Assembly (NCBI GenBank): GCA_025594325.1
Contig: JANHCV010000003.1
Coordinates: forward strand, 1,860,001 to 1,924,000
Length of the DNA: 64,000 bases
Direction of reading: 5' to 3'
From: Blastocladiella emersonii ATCC 22665
Taxonomy: Eukaryota > Fungi > Blastocladiomycota
A program made the translations under genes and the position numbers. Below, piece by piece: positions 22,322-34,807 of the stretch; the first letter of the stretch is position 1; every line of letters starts with the position of its first letter. The notes under the pieces were generated by a model that did not search any database, was not told the origin of the DNA, and saw nothing but the letters and a program-made list of their open reading frames with translations.

Positions 22322-24373
22322 ATGCCCATTCCGCTCCAAGACCAACCTGCCCTCGCGTCGCGCGGGCCAGCGTGGTCGCACTCTGATGCGGACTCATCGA
22401 TCATCGACTGCTTGCAGACCCGCCCAGGCGATGCGGCCGACTTAGTCACCGATTCCATGGACTCTACGCGCTTCGAAGCACTATGGGGCCACATCACCGA
22501 ATTCTTGCGCAACTCCAGCACCGCCTGTGTCGTGCGGCCGCCCGAGCAGATTGCAAACCGCCTACTCGCGCTTCGGTCAGCGTTCTTGACCGAGTACCAC
22601 ATGCGTGTTTGTGCGAACTCCGAGCAGGGTAACGCGAACCGCACCAGGTTCGATGGTACGACTACACACTGGCCAGCTGACGACGCTAATCGCGAACTAA
22701 TCCACAGTCTTCAATTGCTTGCAGCTGCGTTTCCTCGCTAATTTCCGCTGTACACGCGTCTTCTAGAGCTATGGGGCCCGACTCTCGGCTCTTCACACCC
22801 GCTTGCTGCGCCCGTGATCAAACGGGAGCCAGGCCTAAACGCCGACCCGATCCCGCAACTTGCTTCAGCGGTCGATCCGACCATGGCGGCTATACCGCCC
22901 GCGGCCGAGGACGGGCTGCGGTCCCAGTTGCTCCCTCCCCCGCCGCATCCGTCGCTTTTTCAACCAGACTTTGGCGGGCAGCACCTCAGCATGAGCGGCG
23001 AGCCGGGCACGGTGCAGTCCTTCACCTGGCTCGCCCCGCAGATCTCTTCTGCCGATGATGAGCCCATGGACGTCGAACTGCTGGGTCCTTCGCTTGCCGC
23101 GTCGTCTCGACCATCACACCTCGCGGCCGGACCAGTGCTTGCTTCCTCGACGCGTCCCGCGGAATCGCGCGTCCGCAGTCCGGTCCCGATGGTACACGCT
23201 CAACCACACCGTGTACCAGCGCCGAACTCCCGCAAATCGACTGGAGGCCGCGCACCCAAGAAATCCTTTCTCGCCCTGAACGAGCTGCCCGGCGCACTTC
23301 CTGCTTGGCTGGCCCGCGATCGGAACGGCGTCAAATGGCGCGAGGCGCGGGCGAAAGCGGGCACGCGTCGGGAGCTTACTGAGAAGGCGTGGACCGAGCT
23401 TAACGCCCATGGAATCGATATCAGCGAGGTCCGAAAGGCGCTCGACAAGGCTTTCCTCAAGACACGCGAGATGGTCGAGTTTCTTTCCACCACGCCGCAC
23501 GCCGAGTCGGTCGTGACTGCGTACGGGCGCGAGGCGTTGGATGGTACGTCACGGGTTAGAACTTGGTTAGCCTCGAGCTGACTGCGTCCACGCTCTCGAG
23601 TAGCTGTCATCGAGATTCGGTGCGAAAACTTTTACCCGCTGATTGACGCGTTCGGGTACAGGCCGGCCGACCTGCCATGGTTCCTGCAACCAGCGCCCGA
23701 TATCGCTCAACTGGTCCGCGCCGCGCGAATCGAGTTCCCGCAAGAGCTCAACGGGCTCGTACCTATCGACATGCGCGAGGACTTGCCGCTGCGCTCGCGC
23801 GACAGCGTCCGTGAGTCGGTTTCGGACGCGGATCTTGCAACGCTTCGCGAGGCCGAGCCTTCAGCTCCATCGCTGTCCGAATTCCCGCTGTGGACACCGA
23901 CGCCCGCGAACCAGGCGTGGATTGTGCACGCGCAATGGGCGGCGACGCATGCGCCGGGTAGCTTCGGTGACATTCTTCTGCACCGCGACCCGTACGAGCC
24001 CGAGCCGGCCGCTTCTTCGTCGTCGCCCGCCGGATCCCCTCGCGTCAACGGTCCCGGCGCTTCCAGCTGTATCCGCGCGGGGACCGGCGTCGGCGGCATG
24101 GAAGAGTTTGAGGTCGAGGCGATCGTCGACTCGATGGTCAACACGCGCGTAAAGGACGCGTACGGCCGGATCAAGTGCAAGATCTACTGGCGGCACCACG
24201 GGCTCGACTGGCCCTGGACGCCCGCGCCGGACGTGGTCCCTACGGCGCACGAGGCCTTGGCCGGGTTCTATCGGCTCAATCCGAGCAAGCCGAAATCGAC
24301 GCCCGAGCAGCCCAATGAGTGGATCGAGTGGCTCGACGAGCAGGAGTGCGAGCGTAAGGGCGAGGAGGCCTGA
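22322..24373 (+). pseudogene. Myb/SANT-like x2 + H3-tail mimic + chromodomain protein, copy 1 (exons 22322-22655, 22725-23543, 23604-24373); premature TAA at 22739-22741
   Basis: Collinear with copy 2, with the same intron positions and phases. Junction D|AAFPR*FPLY aligns with copy 2 D|QTLPQFFPLY. RKSTGGRAPKK is at 23231-23263 and the chromodomain starts at 24101 (EEFEVEAIVDS...KIYWRHH...WTP...FYRLNPSKP). Confidence 0.8.
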
Positions 24374-24855
24374 GGGAGCGGATTTCGGGAGTTAGTATAG
24401 TCGTTTCGCTTGCACCTCGTGAGCTCGGAGCCTGGGCCGGCCTGTCACGAGTGAATGGCATGCCTCGTTAAGCAATCGGTGCACGACAGGGTCGCGCGCG
24501 GCGAGGAGGGTCGAAGCGTCGAAGAGCGCGCTGCGCCACGTCGTGATCTCAAGTGCCGCCGCCGCTTGACCAGTTCCCTTGGCTTGAAGACTTGTGTTCT
24601 CGCTCGCTTCACTTGCTCGCCCGATAGTAACCTCACTCCCATGAATAAGATGCTCTACTTGCTGAAATTTGATGTCCGCCCGAACGCGACCTGATCTATC
24701 CCCGCTTCAGCCACATCGGCGCGGTTAGTTGTTCCGGCCTTGCTGTTCGACCGGTGCGAGGATCAGCTGTGTGCATCTCGCATGCAGTCCGGGGGAGGAA
24801 CAGTTGCATAAGCCTCGCTGAAAGTGTACAAGGGTATGTATGTTTTTTAAGGAGC

Positions 24856-24915
24856 CGCAGCATCAGATCGTCGGCCCGCTGCCCGCGCAGCATCAGATCG
24901 TCGGCCCGCTGCCCG
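24856..24915. repeat. Perfect 30-bp tandem duplication containing the GPCR stop codon
   Basis: CGCAGCATCAGATCGTCGGCCCGCTGCCCG at 24856-24885 and again at 24886-24915. Confidence 0.95.
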
Positions 24916-27900
24916 TCGTCTCGTTGCCGCTGATCTGGCGCGGGCGCCCGACCACCTTGACCTGGCTCGAGTTCTCGGGCTCGCCCGTCTTGGAATTGGT
25001 GGACCGGCGCGTCGAGAACCCGCACGCCTTGGCGAGCTGCCCGTTCCACAGCGCGAACTGCGCCGGGTTGCTGAACTGGATGTAGATGGCTTGCGCGTTC
25101 TACATAGTGGGCCGTCAGTGACATGCTGGGAGAGAGTTCAACTTGAAGAACGTACCGCGGTGCGCAGCGAGATGATCCCTGCGACCTGCTGGCTGAGCGA
25201 CCCGACCGTCTCGCTCGACTCGGCGGACCCCGGCGCGCCACCATGCGCGATCTGGCTCGCCGACGGGTTGTGGCCCGCAGAGCTGGCCGTGGACGCCTGC
25301 GACCCGGTCGCCGACATCTCCATCTCGACCACGCCGAACAGCGACTGCGTGAGCTCGATCGTGGCGCCAATGCGGCCCGGGATCGAGACGTCGAAAATGT
25401 TGAGCATCGGCACGGCGGGGTCGCCGAGGTACACGATGAAGGCCGGGAACCATGGCGCGGTCAGCGAATCGACGCGACCCTTGATGACGCGCGCCGACGC
25501 GTGCAGGTACAGCGTCTCGATGGTCGACTTGCCGACGGCGCTCGAGTCCTGCAGACTCGGGTCCGAGATGCCGCGCGACGTCGTGCGCTTGCGCACGTTG
25601 GCCTTGGCACTCCACGCCGGCGATGCCTGCGAGCCGCCCATGGCCGTCGGCGACGCGGTCTTGAGCGCAAACGACGTGTCCGACGCGTCCTTTCCGATGA
25701 TCTCCTTGGACTTGAGAATCGACATGATCTTGGGGCCGAACAGGATCGCCTGCGTGCTGATGCACCCGAGCAGCGTGACCACCGTCTGCACAACGAACCA
25801 CAGGGTCAGGTTCGACGTGCTCGAGACGGCGAGCGGGACGCCGATGGCCGCGAGCGCGATCAGGTTGTACATTACCATGCCAACTGGCAAAATTTCGATG
25901 ACGGGCGGTGAGTACGAGCTCCAGAAAAGGCAGACGGTGAGAGGACGTACTCGACTTGGACTCGTTGAAGCGCGCGATCACTGTGCGCGTCACGAAGCCG
26001 AGCGCCGTGCCGACGAGGATCAGGATCACGTTCTACACGATCAGCGAGCGAGTCAGTTTCAGCCGACAGCACAGGGAAATCAGCGACCACGCACGTAGCC
26101 GATGAGCAGCGCCTCGAACGCGCTCTCAGCCCCGCCGCGGCTCTTGCAAACGACGTTGGTGAGGCCCTCGGCGATGAAGATGTTGGTCGGCACGGGCGGG
26201 TCCGTGGCCACCCACGCGATGCAGATGACGGCGTTCACCATGACGAAGCCGCAGCCCCACGCGACGACCTGCAGGTCCGAGATCTTGCGGCCGCGGAGCT
26301 TGATTGTGTTGAACAGGAGGTAAATGCGCCACGTCTTGGCGACCAGGAAGCCGATCGTGGTCGCGAACCCGAGCGACAGGAGGAACGGGCGCGCCGCACA
26401 CGCGCTGGCCGATGGCGCGCCGACTGCCGGAAATACGGACGCGAGGACAGCAAAGATGCCCGCCTGCATGCCCACCGAGATGGACCACGACGTCGCCTTG
26501 ATGGTCGGGTCCGCGCGGAAGTAGATGATGAACGCCGTGATGGCGAGCGTCACGGCCATGGTCAGCCCAGTCACGAACATGAGCGCGATGGCGACGCCGG
26601 ACTGCGCGCTAATGAACGTGAGCCCGGGGTCCTTGACCGTGCAGTCGCGGTCGGGCCCGAGCAGCCACCCGGACTTGCACTGGCACGCGCCCGAATCGAG
26701 GCAAATCCCGCCGCCCGTGACGCCGGCCGCACCGCACTTGGCCGGGCACGGCGGGCACTCGGTGCTTGGGTCGCGCATCGTGTCGGCGCGGCACACGGCC
26801 GAGGCGAGCGTCGACGCGTCGATGATGCGCGGGCCCGTCTCGAGGAGCGGGTTCTGCAGAATGTAGCCGTCGGTGAGGAAGAACGAGAGCGAGGCCACGG
26901 CCATGTACGCCTGGAGGAACGGCTGCTCGTCGAGCGTGAACGCGATGCGCCCGCCGAGGATGCTGTCGGCAATGTCGGTGCTGACGCCGTACCCGGCCAC
27001 GACCATGTTTGTCGAGCCCGCGGTCGCCGTGAGGACCATCTTGGCCGCTTCGGCCGACGGGTACACGATAGCTGCAACGCGCGGGAATGCTGCGAGCGCC
27101 GACTGAATGTCGACGACCGACTGGACCGTGTTACGCACCGACACGGCGAGCGGGAGCGAGTTGCCGCCAAGGCCTGCAGCGACCACGGTACGGCCGCCGG
27201 TCAGCGCGGCCTGGATCCCAGCGCACTTGAGCGTCATGTCGTCGTTGCCGAGCTCCTGCGTAATGCACAGGACCTGCGCGTTGGCCGGGATCAGCGCGTT
27301 GAGCCGCGCACCGACTAGCGCGCCACTGGCGGTCTCGTTCTGGCCAATGTGCACCAGCGACTTGCCGAGCGCGACGCGGTCGAAGCCGCGAACCATGCCC
27401 GTGGCCCACGTCACGACCGGAATGTTCTGGGCCGCGGCCGCGTCGACGAGCGCGGCAAAGTTTTGGCCAGTACCGGTCGACGGGACGGGGAGCACGAGTG
27501 CCGAGACGCGGTCGTTGATGGTCGTCTGGACCAGCGAGCTGAGCGCCTGCAGGTCGAACAGGTTCGTGTCGACGAACCGAACCGTGGTGCCGTGCTCGCG
27601 CGCCGCGGCGAGGGCACCGAACTTGGCCTGCTGGTAGAACGAGTCGGTTCCCTGCCAGCTGCCCGTCGCCGCGATGGCGATGGTGATCGACTAGGGAGGG
27701 CGGCGGGTTAGATCGGTCGCGCTCGGTGAGAGGGTATCGCAAGCGTACGCTGGCACTCGGGCTCGTGCACCCAGACTGCGTCGGGTCAAGCTGACACAGC
27801 TTGCGCTGCGCGTTGCTGAGCTTTATCACGGACGGGCCCGAGAGCAGGAGCTGCGTCGCGAGTGACATACCGCCGGTCATCTGGTAGACCTTGAGCATCT

Positions 27901-29058
27901 GCACGGTCGTGAAAGTCTGGAGGACCTCCTGCTGGTCGATGGCGAACAGGATCTTGCCTTGCAGAATGGCCGTGCACACGTCGGCCGAAATGTCGAAGGT
28001 GGCGATGGCAATGGACGAGGTGCGGCCCTTGTTCTGTACGACCTGGATCGCGCGCATGACCACATCGGTACCCTGCGTGACGATCGAGTCGAGCCCGTTA
28101 ATCGTGTCGACCGCGTTGCCAATGCCCGCGTCGATGGCCGCGATCGAGGTGCCGTCGACGGTCACGGTCGTGCTCGAGGCGGACGCTACTCGCGGAAGCG
28201 ACGTCAGCCGGAGGATCCCTTCTGTGTGCCGCGAGACGTACCCGTGATCGACTTGAGCCCATCCGAGACGCCGTTGCACCGGGCCACGAGCCCCGCGTTG
28301 CCCGCCTCGTGGTTGATGCACGCGATCTTGACCTTGCCCTCGCGGCCGAGCGTCACGCCGACCTTGAACGCGGCCGTGTACTCGGGCTGGCCGACAAAGT
28401 TCATCCTACACAATCGAGCGGTGTGAGCGTAGAAAGAAGAAGCACCAGCTGTATTGCGACGTACACGCCGACCGACGAAGGGAGACCATCGCCGGCGTTG
28501 TACGCGATGACGGTGGCCTGCTTGTTGCGCGTGATGTTGAGCACCGCGTTCCCGACCGTGGCCATGTCGACTACACGAAGGCGACATGTCAGTGACCCAG
28601 CGATCGAGAGCTCGACCGCGGCGCATACCGATCGTGGTGCCGATGAGCGAAAAGTTGGCGGCCGCATTCGCCACGGCGACCGCGTTCTCGACCGGGTCGA
28701 AGATGAGCGGGTTGAGCGGGTACGCCGAGATGTTGTAGAGCTCGTTGGCGCGGGTGATGCCCGTCTTGGACCGACGCCAGAACGCCTCGCGATTCCAGTC
28801 GCCTACATGCGTGATCAGCGTCATCGGTGAACGTGCGTGAGCGAACGAGACCGTACCATGCGAAACGACGCCAATCTGGACCTCGGAGCGGCGGTGGCAG
28901 GTGCGGCACTGCGCGAGCAGACTCGCCACGGACGACGTGGCGGGCGCGCCGACGTCCGCTGCAGCCACGGCCGTGACCAGGAGCACTGCGAGGAGGGCCG
29001 TAGCGAGGCACAGCAGCATGCTGACGGACGCGGTTGATCGGGTTTGGCCTGGATCCAT
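24893..29058 (-). CDS. Class C (GABA-B-like, 7tm_3) GPCR, 1231 aa, 9 exons: signal peptide, two bacterial-type sugar-binding (type I PBP) domains, EGF-like Cys-rich linker, 7TM, cytoplasmic PH-like domain
   Basis: Exons 29058-28857, 28802-28629, 28570-28465, 28405-28242, 28185-27749, 27690-26095, 26032-25951, 25883-25156 and 25099-24893 sum to 3696 nt with all phases consistent. 7TM motifs are IKATS, AKTWRI, FNESK..YN and FGPKI. PBP motifs are SHGD..AFW, FVGQPEY, CINHEAGN..RCNG and AIDQQ/TLDEQPFLQ. Confidence 0.92.
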
Positions 29059-29540
29059 GACGAGAAATAGATCCGGCGGGACGAGTAGCGATGGCAGGGG
29101 TTCGGAGAGCGTGAACTCGGTACGCGTCGCGTGCGCACCCCGCTCCAGTGCGGAGTCTTTATTTTTCCTCGAGCCTTGTTTGGCTGCTGGCTGTGGCCGG
29201 TGACGGGTGGCGCGACCGGGAGACATGCCAAGGCGCGCCAGGCGCACGAGGCGGGAGACAATATCGCGCACGCCACGCTGTGCTGTCTCCTCGGCGCTAG
29301 TCACGCGCCTATCGGGAGCGTTCGGAAATTCGGAAAACATGAACGACGGGGCGGGCGCGTTTGCCGGGAGCCGAAGCGGAAGGTGGGAGACGCGCTGCGC
29401 CACGGCGTGACGGACGCCTCGTGACAGTCCCACCCTGTTCGAGCGGGCAGCCGTGTTCGCTCTCCGCCTCGCCCACACCTCCGCATGCCGTCTCATGAAA
29501 GTAAACCCCTAGACTTGCTGCAATATTATCTCCATCTGCC

Positions 29541-31775
29541 ATGCTACCGCCGCTCCACGACCAGCTGGATCTCGACACACGCAAGTCGGCGTGGTCGCAC
29601 GCCGAGCTTGACGGCCAGATTCTGGACTTTCTTCAGTCCTGCCCAGCTGACGTGGCCGAATTTCTTGCCGACGCCATGACGCAACCACAGTTTGCCCGGC
29701 TCTATACACAAATCACCGAGCACTCGCGAAGCTTGACCAACAGCAGCGCCGGCGTCGTGCTGTCGCGCAAGCTTGTTGCTCGCCGACTGCTAGCGCTTCG
29801 ATCCGCCTTCTTGTCCGAGTACCGGTCGCGTCTTTCCACCGCATCCGAGGATGGGAACGCGGCTCGTGCCAAGTTTGATCGTACGTACGAGTTGGAGGTC
29901 GAGTCTGGAGAGTGGCGGCGGTACCAACTCACAAACCGTGGAAGAAACACTCCCGCAGTTCTTCCCGCTGTACTCTCGTCTGCTCGAGCTATGGGGCCCG
30001 ATCCTCGGTCCATCGCACTCGGCGACGGTGCCGGTGATCAAGCAGGAGCCCGGGCAATCCGACGCTCAGGCGCCCGTAATCAAGCAGGAGCCGACTCGGA
30101 CTGCTGAGCGGGAGCCCGCCGCTTCTACGCTGGCCGGCCAGACCATGCCGCCCGAGGTTTTGACGCCCGATGTTACGCCACTTCCCGCAGCCGCATCGGA
30201 GCAGCTACCTGTGGCTTCGGCGAAGCCTCGGGATCAAGCGGAGCGGCAGTCGTCGCTCCCACCACTGCCGCAGCCTGGGTCAACCAGTCAGCTTACCGGC
30301 TCCAGTGCGTCAAGTGGCGATGTGTCCGAAATTACGACCGCTTTACCCGACGTGCCCAGACCTCGGCCTCAACCTTCTTTGCTCTCATCCACTCAGCACA
30401 AGCGGCCGGCCGACGATCCCATGGACGTCGATCGGCGCGAGCCGCCCACTTCGCCGGCCGCGCCGCCTCGCCCACAGCCCGCTTCGCCGCGGCAATCTCA
30501 GCCTGCGCCTCGTCCCGCGGTGCCCACGCACACCGTCTCCGTCTCGCCCGAGCAGCGCCCGCCGTGGTTTTCACCTGCCCGAAAGTCGACTGGGGGTAAG
30601 GCGCCGCGGAAGCTTGACTACCGGCACGAGGTCGGCGAGATGCCCAAGCTTCTTCCCGCTTGGCTCGCGCGCAACCGGTACGGCGCCAAGTGGCGTAGCG
30701 CGGCGCCCGGGTCGAGCGCGCGCAAGCAGCTCGAGTCCAAGGCCCAGAGCTACTTGGCGACGGAGATGCACACCAAGCACGGTCACCCGACTTACTGGGA
30801 TAACAACTCGATCCGGGCCCAGATCAAAAAGCTTTTGGGTGAGGTCGAGGCGACTGTCGCGTGGCTGCGCACGTCGCGCCACGCCGAGTGGATCCTCACC
30901 GCGTACGGGCGCGAGACGGTCGATGGTACGTGTCACTCTGCTGATTGTGCGACTACTGGAACTCACCGCGCTTCGCTCTAGCCGTAATCAACCTCCGTTG
31001 CAAAAACTTCAAGTCGCTGTTCGACGCGTTCGGCTTCACGCCCGCCGACCTGCCGTGGTTCATGCGTCCCACCGCCGACATTGGGTCGCTGGTCCGCGCC
31101 GCGCGCATCGAGTACCCGCCCGAGCTCAACGGGGTCGTGCCCGCGGACATGCGCAAGGACGTGCCGCTGCGTCCGCGCAAGCGCGTGCGCGAGTCGGTGT
31201 CAGACGCGGACCTCGCCAAGCTGCGCGAGTCGGAGCCCGCTCCTTCGACGCCGCTGCCCGAGATCCCGTTGTGGGCCCCAACGCCCGCCAACCAACTGTG
31301 GGAGCCGCTGGCGCAGTGGGCCATGACGCGGGCGCCGATCTGTTTCGGCGACATTCTCCTGCATCGCGACCCGTACGAGCCCGAGCCCGAGCCAGCATCG
31401 CCCAAGAAGCGCAAGCGCGGCGGCGGTGCCGACGGCGATGGCGCGACAACCAGCAGCTGCGTGCACGCGGGCTCCGACTTTGACGAGGACGAGTTCGAGG
31501 TCGAGGCGATCGTGGACTCGATGGTCAACTCGCGCACCAAGGACGCGTACGGCCGGATAAAGTACAAGATCTACTGGCGGCACCACGGCGTCGAGTCGCA
31601 CCAGCCGTGGACGCCCGCACCCGACGTGGTGCCCACGGCGCCCGAGGCCGTGGCCGAGTTCCACCGCATCAACCCGACCAAGCCGAAGCCGACGCCTGAG
31701 CAGCTCAACGCGTGGATCCCGTGGCTCGACGAGGAGGAGCGCCTGCGCAAAGCCGAGGAGGCCGCGGGCGCGTGA
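29541..31775 (+). CDS. Myb/SANT-like x2 + histone H3-tail mimic + chromodomain protein, copy 2 (exons 29541-29880, 29945-30925, 30982-31775; 704 aa)
   Basis: Intact if intron 1 (29881-29944) uses an AAG acceptor. ARKSTGGKAPRK is at 30577-30612. Chromodomain: EFEVEAIVDS...YKIYWRHHG..WTP...AEFHRINPTKP. Two VIKQEP SUMO consensus motifs. Confidence 0.85.
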
Positions 31776-32074: not shown

Positions 32075-34807
32075 TCACGCAACGTACGTGTACGTGCGGT
32101 TATCCGCCTCGCTGCGGGCGAGGTACTCGCGGTCGATGAGGTCCTCAATGCGGCGCTTGATCATGTTGGTAGACGGCTGGAACCGCGCCGCGACGATACG
32201 GACCGTTTCGGTGATGAGCTCGTTGTGGCCGAGCGTGTTGCGAGCCTTCATGACGCGGACGATGGTCGCGTCAATGAGCCCGCGGCGCTCCTCCTCGACG
32301 CTGGCGAGCGTGGCGGCGCGCTCCGTGTCGGCCTCCCCACGCGTCGGCGCGGCGACGAGCGCGGCGACCTTGAGCTTGGTGCGCTTGTCGGAGAAGTTGG
32401 CGTTGAAGGCGAAGGTGTCGCCCGGGTTGACGGCGCGGGTGGCGGGGGATTTGGTGAGCAGGGCGATCTTGGCGACCGACAGCGACTGGAGCGTGCGCTT
32501 GAGCTCGGGCTCCGGGATGCCCGTTTCCTGGACCAGGTCCTCGTACTTCCACGCGTCGGCGCGGTTGAACAGCAGCAGGACGACCATGGCGTACGTGGTG
32601 ACCGACAGCTCCTTCTTCTGCTTGTAGTAGGCGGCCACGTCGGCGGTGCCGAGCTGCGGGAGCCACGTCAGCGTGCGGCTCGTGTGCTTGGACGCGTAGA
32701 AGGTCTCGAACTCCTTGATGACGCCGGCGAGGACCGCCGGGTACACGCACTTGGCGCCGTCGGCGGTCACGGGCCACATGGCGGAGGTCAGGACCTGGAC
32801 CGTGAGGGCGGGCGGCGGGGCGACGCCCGACTCGGACTTGTTGCGGCGGTACGTGTCGAAGGCGAGCGACATGTCGTGGGACGTGGCCATGTCCTGGATC
32901 ATCTTCTCGAAGCGGGCCGTGAACTGATTGCCGCACAGGGTGCGGAAGCTGGTGATGGTCTGCTGCTCCCAGTCGTCGTTGGCCGACTGCTTGCGCAACA
33001 GGCGGCGCGCGAGGTGCTGGTTGTAGAACTTCTCGAACGTGTCCTTGGACTGCAGGAACCGGAACACGGCGTGCGCGGACCGCAGCCGCGCCTCGATCTC
33101 GGCCTCGGACTGCTTGAGTCCCTTCTTGAGATGGTAGTCAAAGTACTGCGACAGGTACTCGGCGTTACGCGGCTCGCTGTTGACCACCTCGTCGAGCGCT
33201 ACCTGCAGCCCGCGCTCGTAGTCCGGGTTCTTCTCGAAGCACTCGTCGAGCAGCCGCTGCGACAGCGTGGTGAGCGACACGACGAATGTGACCCACTTGA
33301 CCGAGGTCCCGACGATCCCGCTCGGCGCGTTCGGGTCTGCCGCCGCCGCGGCAACAGCAGCACCGGATGGGGTCGCGGGCGCATCGCCGTTGGCTCCCGC
33401 GGCAGAACTGGATGCCGCGCCAGCAGCCGACGACGAAGCGGCGGCCGTCGACACGTTCGACGCGCTACCGGACCGCTGCATGGCGGGACTCGCGTCCTCC
33501 TTCTGCCGCTGCTCGAGGTCGCGCTTGCCGAGCTCGCGGAAGCAGTTAGCGACGGCAGTGAGGAGCTTAGCGCGGCCGGTGTCGACGCGGCCGTAGAGGC
33601 GGTAGGCGCGGACGATGGGCGCGACGGGCGCGCTATCGTCGGGGTTGGCGGCGAGCGCGGCAACGAGGTTCGCGACGCCGGCGAGGACCGTGTCGGCGGG
33701 GTCGGCGAGGATGGCTCGGGCAGTGAGGGCGAGGAGCTGGTCGCGCGAGGACTTGTGGACGTAGTTGTCGACGCGCTCGTGCTCGGCGCGCAGCCACGCG
33801 TCGCCCGTGGCGAGGTACTGCGGGATGTCCGACTCGGCGAGCAGGCGCTTGGACTGGGCCGCGTAGTGCTCGTCGGTGGCGGCGAGGAAGGCGCGCTCAA
33901 AGTCGACGGCGTACACGGACCCGGGGACAATGTCCTCGCCGAAGATAAGGGTCGGGTGGTGCATGCCTACGAGTGCGGGGTGCGGGAGTGAGCTTAGGTG
34001 CACGGGAGATCAAGCACGCACGAAACGTGCCCTGCGGGTCCGAGGTGCTGTCGCCAACGTCGACGAGCATCTGGATCACCTTGCGCATCAGCGAAATGTC
34101 GATGCGGTTGCCCTCGCGCTCGCAGCGGATCTGGTCGAGCAGGCACTGGCGCAGTGCGGAGCGGACGGGGAGGAGCGTCGAGCGCAGGATCTGGTCGCGG
34201 AAGAGCAGCAGGCCGAGCTCCCACGAGGTCGGAGTGTTGCGCTGGCTGCAATAGTTCTTGTCCTGTACGGGAAACGGGTGTGAGCGGGCGGCCACTAACG
34301 GAGCACGCGAGAAGTGCAGCGTACAAAGTACATGAAGACGTCGGACGTGAGCTTGAGGGCGACCGTGTAGTTGCTCCAGATGGCGGCGACGCGGTCGAGG
34401 AACAGCTGGGCGTGGTCGCCGGCGAGGTCGCCGACCATGGCGGGGGTCAGGTCGGCATTGACGCGGGCCTGCAGCAGCTCGCGCAGCACGCGCTTGATGT
34501 TCTGGTACAGCAGGTCGCCGCGGCGGTGCAGCGTCAGCTGGTACGTGTTGCGGTAGATCTCCTCGAACGACAGCAGCGACGCGTTCTGCGCGTGGATCAC
34601 CTCGATGGCGCCGAGCACTATGTCGAGCGACTTTTGGTAGTCGGCGTCCGACTCCTGCAGAGGGCGATGGCGGGTTGCGGGTGAGCAGTGGGTCCATCAC
34701 GGCGTCATCATCATCAAGGCGTGCAGTGCGTGGGGGAGACTGACCTTGCGAGGGGCGCGGATCTTGATGCGCTTGCCGGCAGCTGCCGCAGATGCCGACG
34801 AGGACAT
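32075..34807 (-). CDS. CUL3: Cullin-3; 4 exons
   Basis: N-terminal KRIKIRAP and LSFEEIYRNTYQLTLH, cullin homology region (KDTFEKFYNQHLARRLL), neddylation motif IDATIVRVMKAR, and C-terminal LIDREYLAR...YTYVA. Confidence 0.95.

Follow-up and report, generated by a model that had tools for sequence, protein, structure and literature searches.

Introduction

Histone mimicry, in which a non-histone protein carries a look-alike of a histone tail, is already known, and the look-alike usually spans four residues. In G9a/GLP and SETDB1, both of which automethylate, in ATF7IP (at K16) and in LIG1 and WIZ, a short motif resembling the sequence around lysine 9 of histone H3 (H3K9) lies in a disordered part of a chromatin regulator. 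Methylation of such motifs is established for ATF7IP, for SETDB1 and for the EHMT substrates WIZ and LIG1; H3K9 methyltransferases use the mimics as substrates, and chromodomain or Tudor proteins subsequently recognize them (PMC6172828; PMC10611923; 10.1101/2025.10.22.683908). What these mimics have in common is in essence a core of four residues, of which the second and third are RK (PMC10611923). The ARSK of influenza NS1 and the ARKS of SARS-CoV-2 ORF8 are likewise short H3-tail look-alikes on non-histone proteins, which engage the chromatin enzymes of the host (10.1101/2021.11.10.468057). Here we analyze a 64,000-nucleotide stretch of the genome of the blastocladiomycete fungus Blastocladiella emersonii ATCC 22665 (contig JANHCV010000003.1, positions 1,860,001 to 1,924,000; hereafter the window), which holds two members of a family of paralogous genes encoding non-histone proteins with a copy of the H3 tail upstream of a C-terminal chromodomain. 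We propose, with a probability of roughly 45%, that this H3-like segment serves as a substrate or pseudosubstrate for H3K9-directed enzymes on a chromatin-tethered protein.

Compared with mimics of the G9a/ATF7IP/LIG1 type, the B. emersonii family keeps nine residues in all copies and twelve identical ones in one of them, spanning K9, S10, T11 and K14, whereas the alanine two positions before the lysine (-2 Ala) is not conserved; the carrier, a putative substrate, is lineage-specific and has a chromodomain of its own. The viral mimics, by contrast, span 4-6 residues and belong to pathogen proteins directed against a host, while the present family is endogenous, duplicated and selectively maintained. 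A further likeness is to the Clr4/SUV39 read-write module and the Clr4 autoregulatory loop, where a chromodomain is combined with a lysine-bearing segment that enters the active site of an H3K9 methyltransferase (PMC7700585), an arrangement that we propose for the family; both systems could couple chromatin reading to writing. Unlike Clr4, however, the family has no SET domain and has its chromodomain and substrate-like segment on a separate protein; the Clr4 segment is not a literal H3-tail copy, and the Clr4 of Blastocladiomycota has no chromodomain (PMC9963178).

An H3-tail copy in a non-histone protein

On the plus strand of the window, the gene that we call copy 2 encodes at 30577-30612 the peptide ARKSTGGKAPRK, identical to residues 7-18 of histone H3, and its paralog copy 1 encodes at 23228-23263 (+) the peptide SRKSTGGRAPKK, which is the same segment with the changes A7S, K14R and R17K (six-frame regular-expression search). 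A preliminary description of the window had reported the twelve-residue match in copy 2 and RKSTGGRAPKK in copy 1; the first is exact by regular expression and by phmmer, and the second is found at 23231-23263 (+). When the first 45 residues of the public copy 2 protein were compared by phmmer with a library of solved structures, histone H3 tails or tail fusions made up all of the best 60 of 130 matches; query residues 10-21 were identical to H3.1 residues 7-18, and the PDB matches were restricted to query residues 8-22. From the amino-acid composition of the window's own six frames, the 34-Mb genome would by chance contain 3e-7 copies of the 12-mer and 1e-3 of the nine-residue core described below; the motif is real and not a product of chance.

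At the protein level the likeness to H3 stops at residues 7-18. Nothing like H3 1-6 is present in the family, and the flanks resemble neither H3 1-6 nor H3 from residue 19 onward, except for a weak RKQLxSKA in copy 2 only. This second H3-like stretch, ARKQLESKA at 30718-30744, lies 35 residues past the first motif and matches H3 17-24 (RKQLATKA) at 6/8 positions; the likeness is probably coincidental, because the other copies keep only R..L invariant. The preliminary description had called the host a non-histone protein ending in a chromodomain, and so it is: it has no Pfam histone match, and its profile matches CDY, MPP8 and HP1. That the host is itself a histone H3 was ruled out, since it lacks a histone-fold match and its similarity is limited to the tail segment. 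In the AlphaFold model the motif falls within a stretch with a predicted local distance difference test (pLDDT) score below 50, which we take as disordered, 14-24 residues before a folded domain, and should therefore be accessible like a tail.

The family comprises at least four paralogous genes in B. emersonii ATCC 22665, two of them within the window. Copy 1 corresponds to the hypothetical protein H9P43_003481 and copy 2 to H9P43_003483, and a word-indexed search recovered a third named protein, H9P43_003463. The locus fetched around this third protein (numbered here as L001) holds copy A (L001 6337-8492), which carries APRKSTGGKAPRKM, and copy B (L001 8739-11092), which carries PPRKSTGGKAPQNH; together they form a second tandem pair about 42 kb before the window on the same 2.64-Mb contig. 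An exhaustive hidden Markov model (HMM) search of 1.84e9 representative proteins found no relative outside B. emersonii, nor did word-indexed searches of 5.8e9 proteins or two metagenome scans, in keeping with the earlier remark that no characterized fungal protein of this architecture was known. We thus found the family in B. emersonii only. A search of the 5.8e9 proteins with the motif alone likewise gave no relative, with only 11 candidates in the allowed length range, and has little bearing on H3-tail copies in other protein families.

The core RKSTGG[K/R]AP (H3 8-16) is present in all four paralogs, copies A and B included, and eight of its nine columns are invariant in a four-way alignment. 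It stands in a Pro/Ser linker with a pairwise identity of 27-44%, where 12% of the columns without gaps show no variation, and the corrected probability of meeting such an invariant block anywhere in the linker is ~7e-5. Between copies 2 and 1, seven of the twelve motif codons differ synonymously and three conservatively (A/S, K/R, R/K). In Nei-Gojobori counts over the nine core codons in six pairs, the proportion of synonymous differences (pS) is 0.57-0.80 in five of the six, near saturation. When copies 2, A and B are compared with one another, the proportion of nonsynonymous differences (pN) is 0 in all three pairs; pairs that include copy 1 have a pN of 0.13-0.18, the sole amino-acid change in the core being the K to R of copy 1. 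The 40 columns just upstream of the motif have a pN of 0.27-0.62, against 0-0.18 in the core, and omega in the folded parts of the proteins is ~0.2-0.5. Since synonymous change is near saturation without amino-acid change beyond K/R, it is the peptide and not the DNA that is conserved, and the codon patterns indicate that the four genes and the motif are under purifying selection. The preliminary description had already suggested selection on the peptide from synonymous divergence between two copies, and had staked the idea on the motif recurring in other family members and differing from its flanks; the idea is borne out and now rests on four paralogs.

Copies 2 and A are identical at 30/32 nucleotides over the motif, which implies that local gene conversion occurs; the other pairs are not explained by conversion. 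In addition, copy 2 (30578-31761) and copy B (L001 9852-11081) share a continuous 80% DNA identity that starts exactly at the motif, and their pS is 0.14-0.25 in the 3' half compared with 0.5-0.6 in exon 1. Such a pattern points to conversion between genes of the two tandem pairs, the converted tract having an edge at the motif or close to it.

The residues that are kept point to the kind of partner that the motif may have. In copies 2, 1, A and B respectively, the equivalent of H3 A7 is A, S, P and P, that of K14 is K, R, K and K, and that of R17-K18 is RK, KK, RK and QN, while R8-G13 and A15-P16 are invariant. HP1/Pc-type chromodomains mainly bind ARKS; for them Ala at -2 is an absolute requirement, and what follows the lysine on its C-terminal side adds little to binding (PMC3013012). 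As an HP1/Pc ligand of the ARKS/T form the family fails, Ala being present at -2 in copy 2 only. SUV39H2, on the other hand, is accurate in its reading of R8, S10, T11 and G12, while T6, A7, G13 and K14 contribute as well, and Pro is among the residues that SUV39H1 tolerates at -2 (PMC8303541). The family has the features of a KMT1-class substrate, namely an RK core, S/T at +1, a small residue at +2 and a predicted disordered segment, RKSTGG being invariant in all four copies. Because R8-P16 is kept while the -2 Ala varies, the opposite of what HP1/Pc proteins need and a match to the SUV39-type read-out, the conserved set looks like a K9-region enzyme-recognition sequence rather than a site where a classical methyl-lysine chromodomain would dock.

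A chromodomain of retrotransposon type

The chromodomain of copy 2 (31491-31688, +) is of the chromovirus type, with the tail FHRINPTKPK, the segment YWRHHG at 31572-31589 and the cage residues F (within EFEVEAI), W and H; that of copy 1 (24104-24295, +) has the tail FYRLNPSKPK and YWRHHG at 24185-24202. As a single sequence the domain matches Pfam Chromo (PF00385) at E=0.0024 with 18.2 bits, under the cut-off of 25.1, and yeast Chd1 chromodomain 2 is matched at E=3e-4. A profile built from the four paralogs and their chromoviral relatives matches the chromodomains of CDY/CDYL, MPP8, HP1 and Clr4 at 1e-15 to 1e-9, and its best solved-structure matches are CDY/CDYL and MPP8 (1e-15 to 1e-12). 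Searched against the 1.84e9 representative proteins, a last-exon profile retrieved one cluster of the family's own and four chromodomains at 1e-14 to 7e-4, at least three of which stand at the C-terminal end of retrotransposon integrase fragments. The nearest relatives are the chromodomains that end Ty3/gypsy (chromovirus) integrases, the likeness including the EFEVEAI start and reaching the FHxxxPxKP tail. By these matches, the C-terminal domain is a genuine chromodomain of retrotransposon (chromovirus) type.

The aromatic cage differs from that of the relatives. Group I chromoviruses keep the Y-W-Y cage of HP1 (PMC3605345), whereas the family has F-W-H, all four copies having His in third place (WRHH, aligned with the WKGY of relatives), and thus does not have the three-aromatic cage of the methyl-lysine reader subclass (HP1/Pc/CDY type). 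Methyl-lysine reading by the family chromodomain is accordingly possible, not assured. CDY/CDYL and MPP8, which read ARKS-type motifs on histones and non-histone proteins, have a full aromatic cage; they carry no H3-tail copy of such length and show no homology to the family beyond the chromodomain.

The rest of the gene has the appearance of a host gene. Unlike the chromoviral genes it bears introns, and no integrase, reverse transcriptase (RT) or RNase H Pfam domains, long terminal repeats (LTRs) or terminal inverted repeats (TIRs) were found with the chromodomain genes. Between copies, similarity sets in ~50 bp ahead of the ATG and ends with the stop codon. A transposon origin of the whole gene was rejected on the lack of LTR, TIR, RT and integrase, the conserved introns and this limit of the similarity.

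Gene structure and public gene models

A single three-exon model fits all four genes and gives intact frames of 627-740 amino acids, with both introns phase-1, GT-AG, 56-111 nt long and at homologous positions in every copy. In copy 2 (+), which has a predicted protein of 705 amino acids, exon 1 (29541-29880) encodes an N-terminal helical domain of 113 amino acids and is followed by intron 1 (29881-29944; 64 nt, GTACGT..AAG, phase 1). Exon 2 (29945-30925), the boundaries of which are conserved in the four paralogs, encodes the Pro/Ser-rich linker, the H3-like motif and the start of a second helical domain. Intron 2 (30926-30981; 56 nt, GTACGT..CTCTAG, phase 1), which is also present in the public model H9P43_003483, separates it from exon 3 (30982-31775), with a conserved middle region, the patch PKKRKR resembling a nuclear localization signal (NLS), the chromodomain and the stop codon. 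The intron 1 splice of copy 2 is the sole one that leaves the family-conserved LPxxFPLYxRLLELWGP in frame. A CAG acceptor lies 14 nt past the AAG at 29944, and its use would shift the frame into a 188-amino-acid open reading frame (29541-30107) with the N-terminal domain only, so that it could represent alternative splicing.

Copy 1 spans 22322-24373 (+), with exons at 22322-22655, 22767-23543 and 23604-24373 that encode 627 amino acids when the acceptor at 22766 is used. With the acceptor homologous to that of the paralogs (after 22724), a TAA at 22739-22741 falls in frame, while the acceptor at 22766 gives an intact frame and skips the conserved LPxxFPLYxRLLE segment; by this reading copy 1 may be an altered isoform or heading for decay.

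The public models treat the four paralogs in four mutually inconsistent ways. In the copy 2 model translation begins at an internal ATG and 126 nt (30430-30555) are spliced out, the copy B model is N-terminally truncated with a start downstream of the motif, and the copy A model is fused to an upstream AAA_5 gene into a 1625-amino-acid product (L001 1459-8492). The copy 1 model is taken up below.

A substrate-like segment on a putatively chromatin-bound protein

The predicted order of parts, from N-terminal helical domain through a disordered linker with SUMO-type sites, the H3-tail copy, a helical domain and an NLS-like patch to the chromodomain, suggests how such a protein may work. By our proposal, H3-tail enzymes would accept the H3-like segment in their active sites; an H3K9 methyltransferase of KMT1/Clr4/DIM-5 type is the foremost candidate, and an S10 kinase, a K14 acetyltransferase or a K9 demethylase may use the segment likewise. 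The chromodomain, and perhaps the helical domains too, would hold the protein on chromatin, where it would bring in the H3K9 machinery, keep it in place or regulate it at the sites that the protein occupies. The chromodomain of Clr4 has been lost in Blastocladiomycota (PMC9963178), and the family may supply in trans the chromatin tether that the KMT1 of this phylum lost along with it. A fuller version, which we regard as doubtful, casts the family as a trans-acting "read-write adaptor" whose evolution followed the loss of the KMT1 chromodomain: its retrotransposon-derived chromodomain would tether the protein, while the copy of H3 8-16 would plug into the methyltransferase (possibly an S10 kinase or a K14 acetyltransferase), holding the enzyme or gating it allosterically.

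Several points weigh against a role as substrate or pseudosubstrate. The specificity data come from mammalian enzymes. Arg at the K14 equivalent of copy 1 and the absence of R17-K18 from copy B mean that a function centered on K14 or K18 is not universal in the family, and the nine-residue conservation could equally serve another binder of the H3 tail, such as a demethylase, a kinase, a 14-3-3 protein or an importin. Given the non-canonical F-W-H cage, tethering through methylated H3K9 (H3K9me) is uncertain. The presence of KMT1 in B. emersonii is taken from a phylum-level statement (PMC9963178), and that of HP1 is assumed. As to expression, the public annotation of B. emersonii is ab initio, made without RNA-seq (PMC9730499), and its copy 1 model splices the motif out as a 324-nt in-frame, stop-free "intron" (23101-23424); the four sequencing runs that hold the locus are genomic, with contigs unspliced through both introns, and that the motif exon is part of the predicted transcripts rests on comparative evidence only. 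Nuclear localization, enzyme docking, methylation and any effect on heterochromatin are inferred.

We nevertheless rank the substrate reading above four others: a self-read docking site, a decoy, an import mimic and a non-functional segment. The first of these, which we consider unlikely, is that methylation of the K9-like lysine creates a binding site for a chromodomain, either one of HP1 type or that of the family itself, and that this binding leads within one molecule to autoinhibition and between molecules to polymerization or scaffolding. The ARKS context of copy 2 is perfect for this, a chromodomain is present in the same protein, and the pairs G9a-HP1 and ATF7IP-MPP8 offer precedents (PMC6172828; 10.1101/2025.10.22.683908). 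HP1/Pc chromodomains, however, have the absolute need for Ala at -2 and the indifference to residues C-terminal to the lysine noted above (PMC3013012), whereas in the family the -2 residue is variable (A, S, P, P), Q5 and T6 have no counterpart and +1 to +7 are the frozen positions, and all four of its chromodomains have His at the third cage position.

The preliminary description had cast the protein as both a reader and a decoy substrate. Its decoy or substitute-substrate half agrees with the conservation of R8-P16, and its self-read half, with the polymerization that would follow, is weakened by the cage His and the variable -2; the first half fits better because the conserved residues match the SUV39 read-out and not the needs of HP1/Pc proteins, and because the cage lacks a third aromatic residue. 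A decoy in the strict sense is a different proposal, namely that a soluble tail copy titrates writers, readers or erasers off nucleosomes and so dampens heterochromatin, perhaps as an anti-silencing factor derived from the retrotransposon that donated the chromodomain. The motif is indeed a near-perfect look-alike of a substrate, the chromodomain is of chromoviral origin and the family has expanded in tandem. Yet there are no transposon features around the copies, the four that were found sit at fixed loci with conserved introns and omega <1, and titration of abundant histone tails by a 700-amino-acid protein in stoichiometric amounts is implausible unless it is targeted. We therefore give such a competitor a still lower chance than the docking site, and the selfish, transposon-borne factor envisaged in the preliminary description finds no support, transposon features being absent and selection purifying.

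The N-terminal tail of H3 is also an import signal for carriers of the Kap123/importin-4 type. The H3-tail copy might thus be a histone-type signal for import, through the H3 importin pathway, or for chaperone binding, not used by modifying enzymes at all, and the motif segment is basic and lies in a predicted disordered region. Copies 2 and B, however, already have a classical basic patch (PKKRKR and PRKRK), copy 1 has Arg at the K14 equivalent and copy B has lost R17-K18, and the strict invariance of S10-T11-G12-G13 is not needed by a charge-based signal, so that we judge this explanation improbable.

Least probable of all is a non-functional peptide, intronic or untranslated or in decaying genes and conserved by gene conversion, for although the public models conflict and that of copy 1 drops the motif, copies 2 and A differ at 2/32 nt across it, copy 1, when spliced in the manner of its paralogs, has a TAA in frame and long open reading frames are common in this 67% GC DNA, five of the six pairs are near-saturated synonymously with amino acids unchanged beyond K/R (gene conversion, which would erase synonymous differences too, cannot explain the conservation in these five), the 324-nt and 126-nt "introns" are stop-free multiples of three and 3-6x longer than six conserved introns (56-111 nt), and one three-exon model fits all four genes.

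Other parts of the proteins and neighboring genes

The 113-residue N-terminal domain shows 48-50% identity among the four paralogs and has an all-helical AlphaFold model (pLDDT 75), with no Pfam match and no fold match in the PDB or in AlphaFold DB clusters. The second helical domain, which starts with LPAWLARNRYGAKWR, begins 14-24 residues past the motif; in copy 2 it covers 30652-30925 (+) and continues into exon 3. It is conserved in the four copies, and its helices are modeled at pLDDT 55-74. The AlphaFold model of the public copy 2 protein as a whole is poor (pLDDT 42), and a wide structural search with it gave only sub-noise helical matches (Z up to 6). Neither helical domain has a credible Pfam match in any copy (up to E=10), and profile-profile comparison (hhalign) found no similarity between the two. 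As a weak lead, language-model features of the second helical domain have a similarity of 0.79-0.83 to Myb/SANT-like domains (MADF, Myb_DNA-bind_3/4) and DUF6818. The label "two Myb/SANT domains" was not adopted, given the lack of a Pfam match, the folds below noise and the absence of similarity between the two domains.

In the linker of copy 2, two IKQEP sites (30037-30051 and 30079-30093, +) fit the SUMO-type psi-K-x-E consensus, and every paralog has at least one (I/V)K(Q/R)EPG site in its disordered linker, that of copy 1 being at 22817-22831. A second small conserved island, EPMDV(D/E), is found at 30418-30432 and 23063-23077. Ahead of the chromodomain lies the basic NLS-like patch, PKKRKR in copy 2 (31401-31418) and PRKRK in copy B, and the proteins are probably nuclear.

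Between copies 1 and 2, a large minus-strand gene rich in open reading frames occupies 24700-29100, and a cullin-like gene follows copy 2 at 32075-34003 (-). We saw no functional link of these two neighbors to the family.

Significance

What is new here relative to known histone mimicry is the extent of the copy, 9-12 residues identical to H3 over the K9/S10/T11/K14 cluster, kept intact through old duplications and standing beside a domesticated retrotransposon chromodomain. There are practical consequences as well. Copies 2 and A would yield the Arg-C peptide KSTGGKAPR, identical to the one by which marks at H3K9 and K14 are quantified, and antibodies against H3K9me, phosphorylated S10 (S10ph) or acetylated K14 (K14ac) may cross-react with ~70-80 kDa proteins in B. 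emersonii.

The family lends itself very well to experiments in peptide biochemistry. If the H3K9 machinery uses the motif, the family would be an unusually clean natural setting in which to study how the nucleosomal tail is told apart, by writers, erasers and readers, from an identical stretch on a soluble scaffold. It could also throw light on the coupling of reading to writing in a lineage with a chromodomain-less Clr4. Were the adaptor version to hold, this lineage would need a surrogate histone tail, borne by a non-histone protein, for its heterochromatin to spread.

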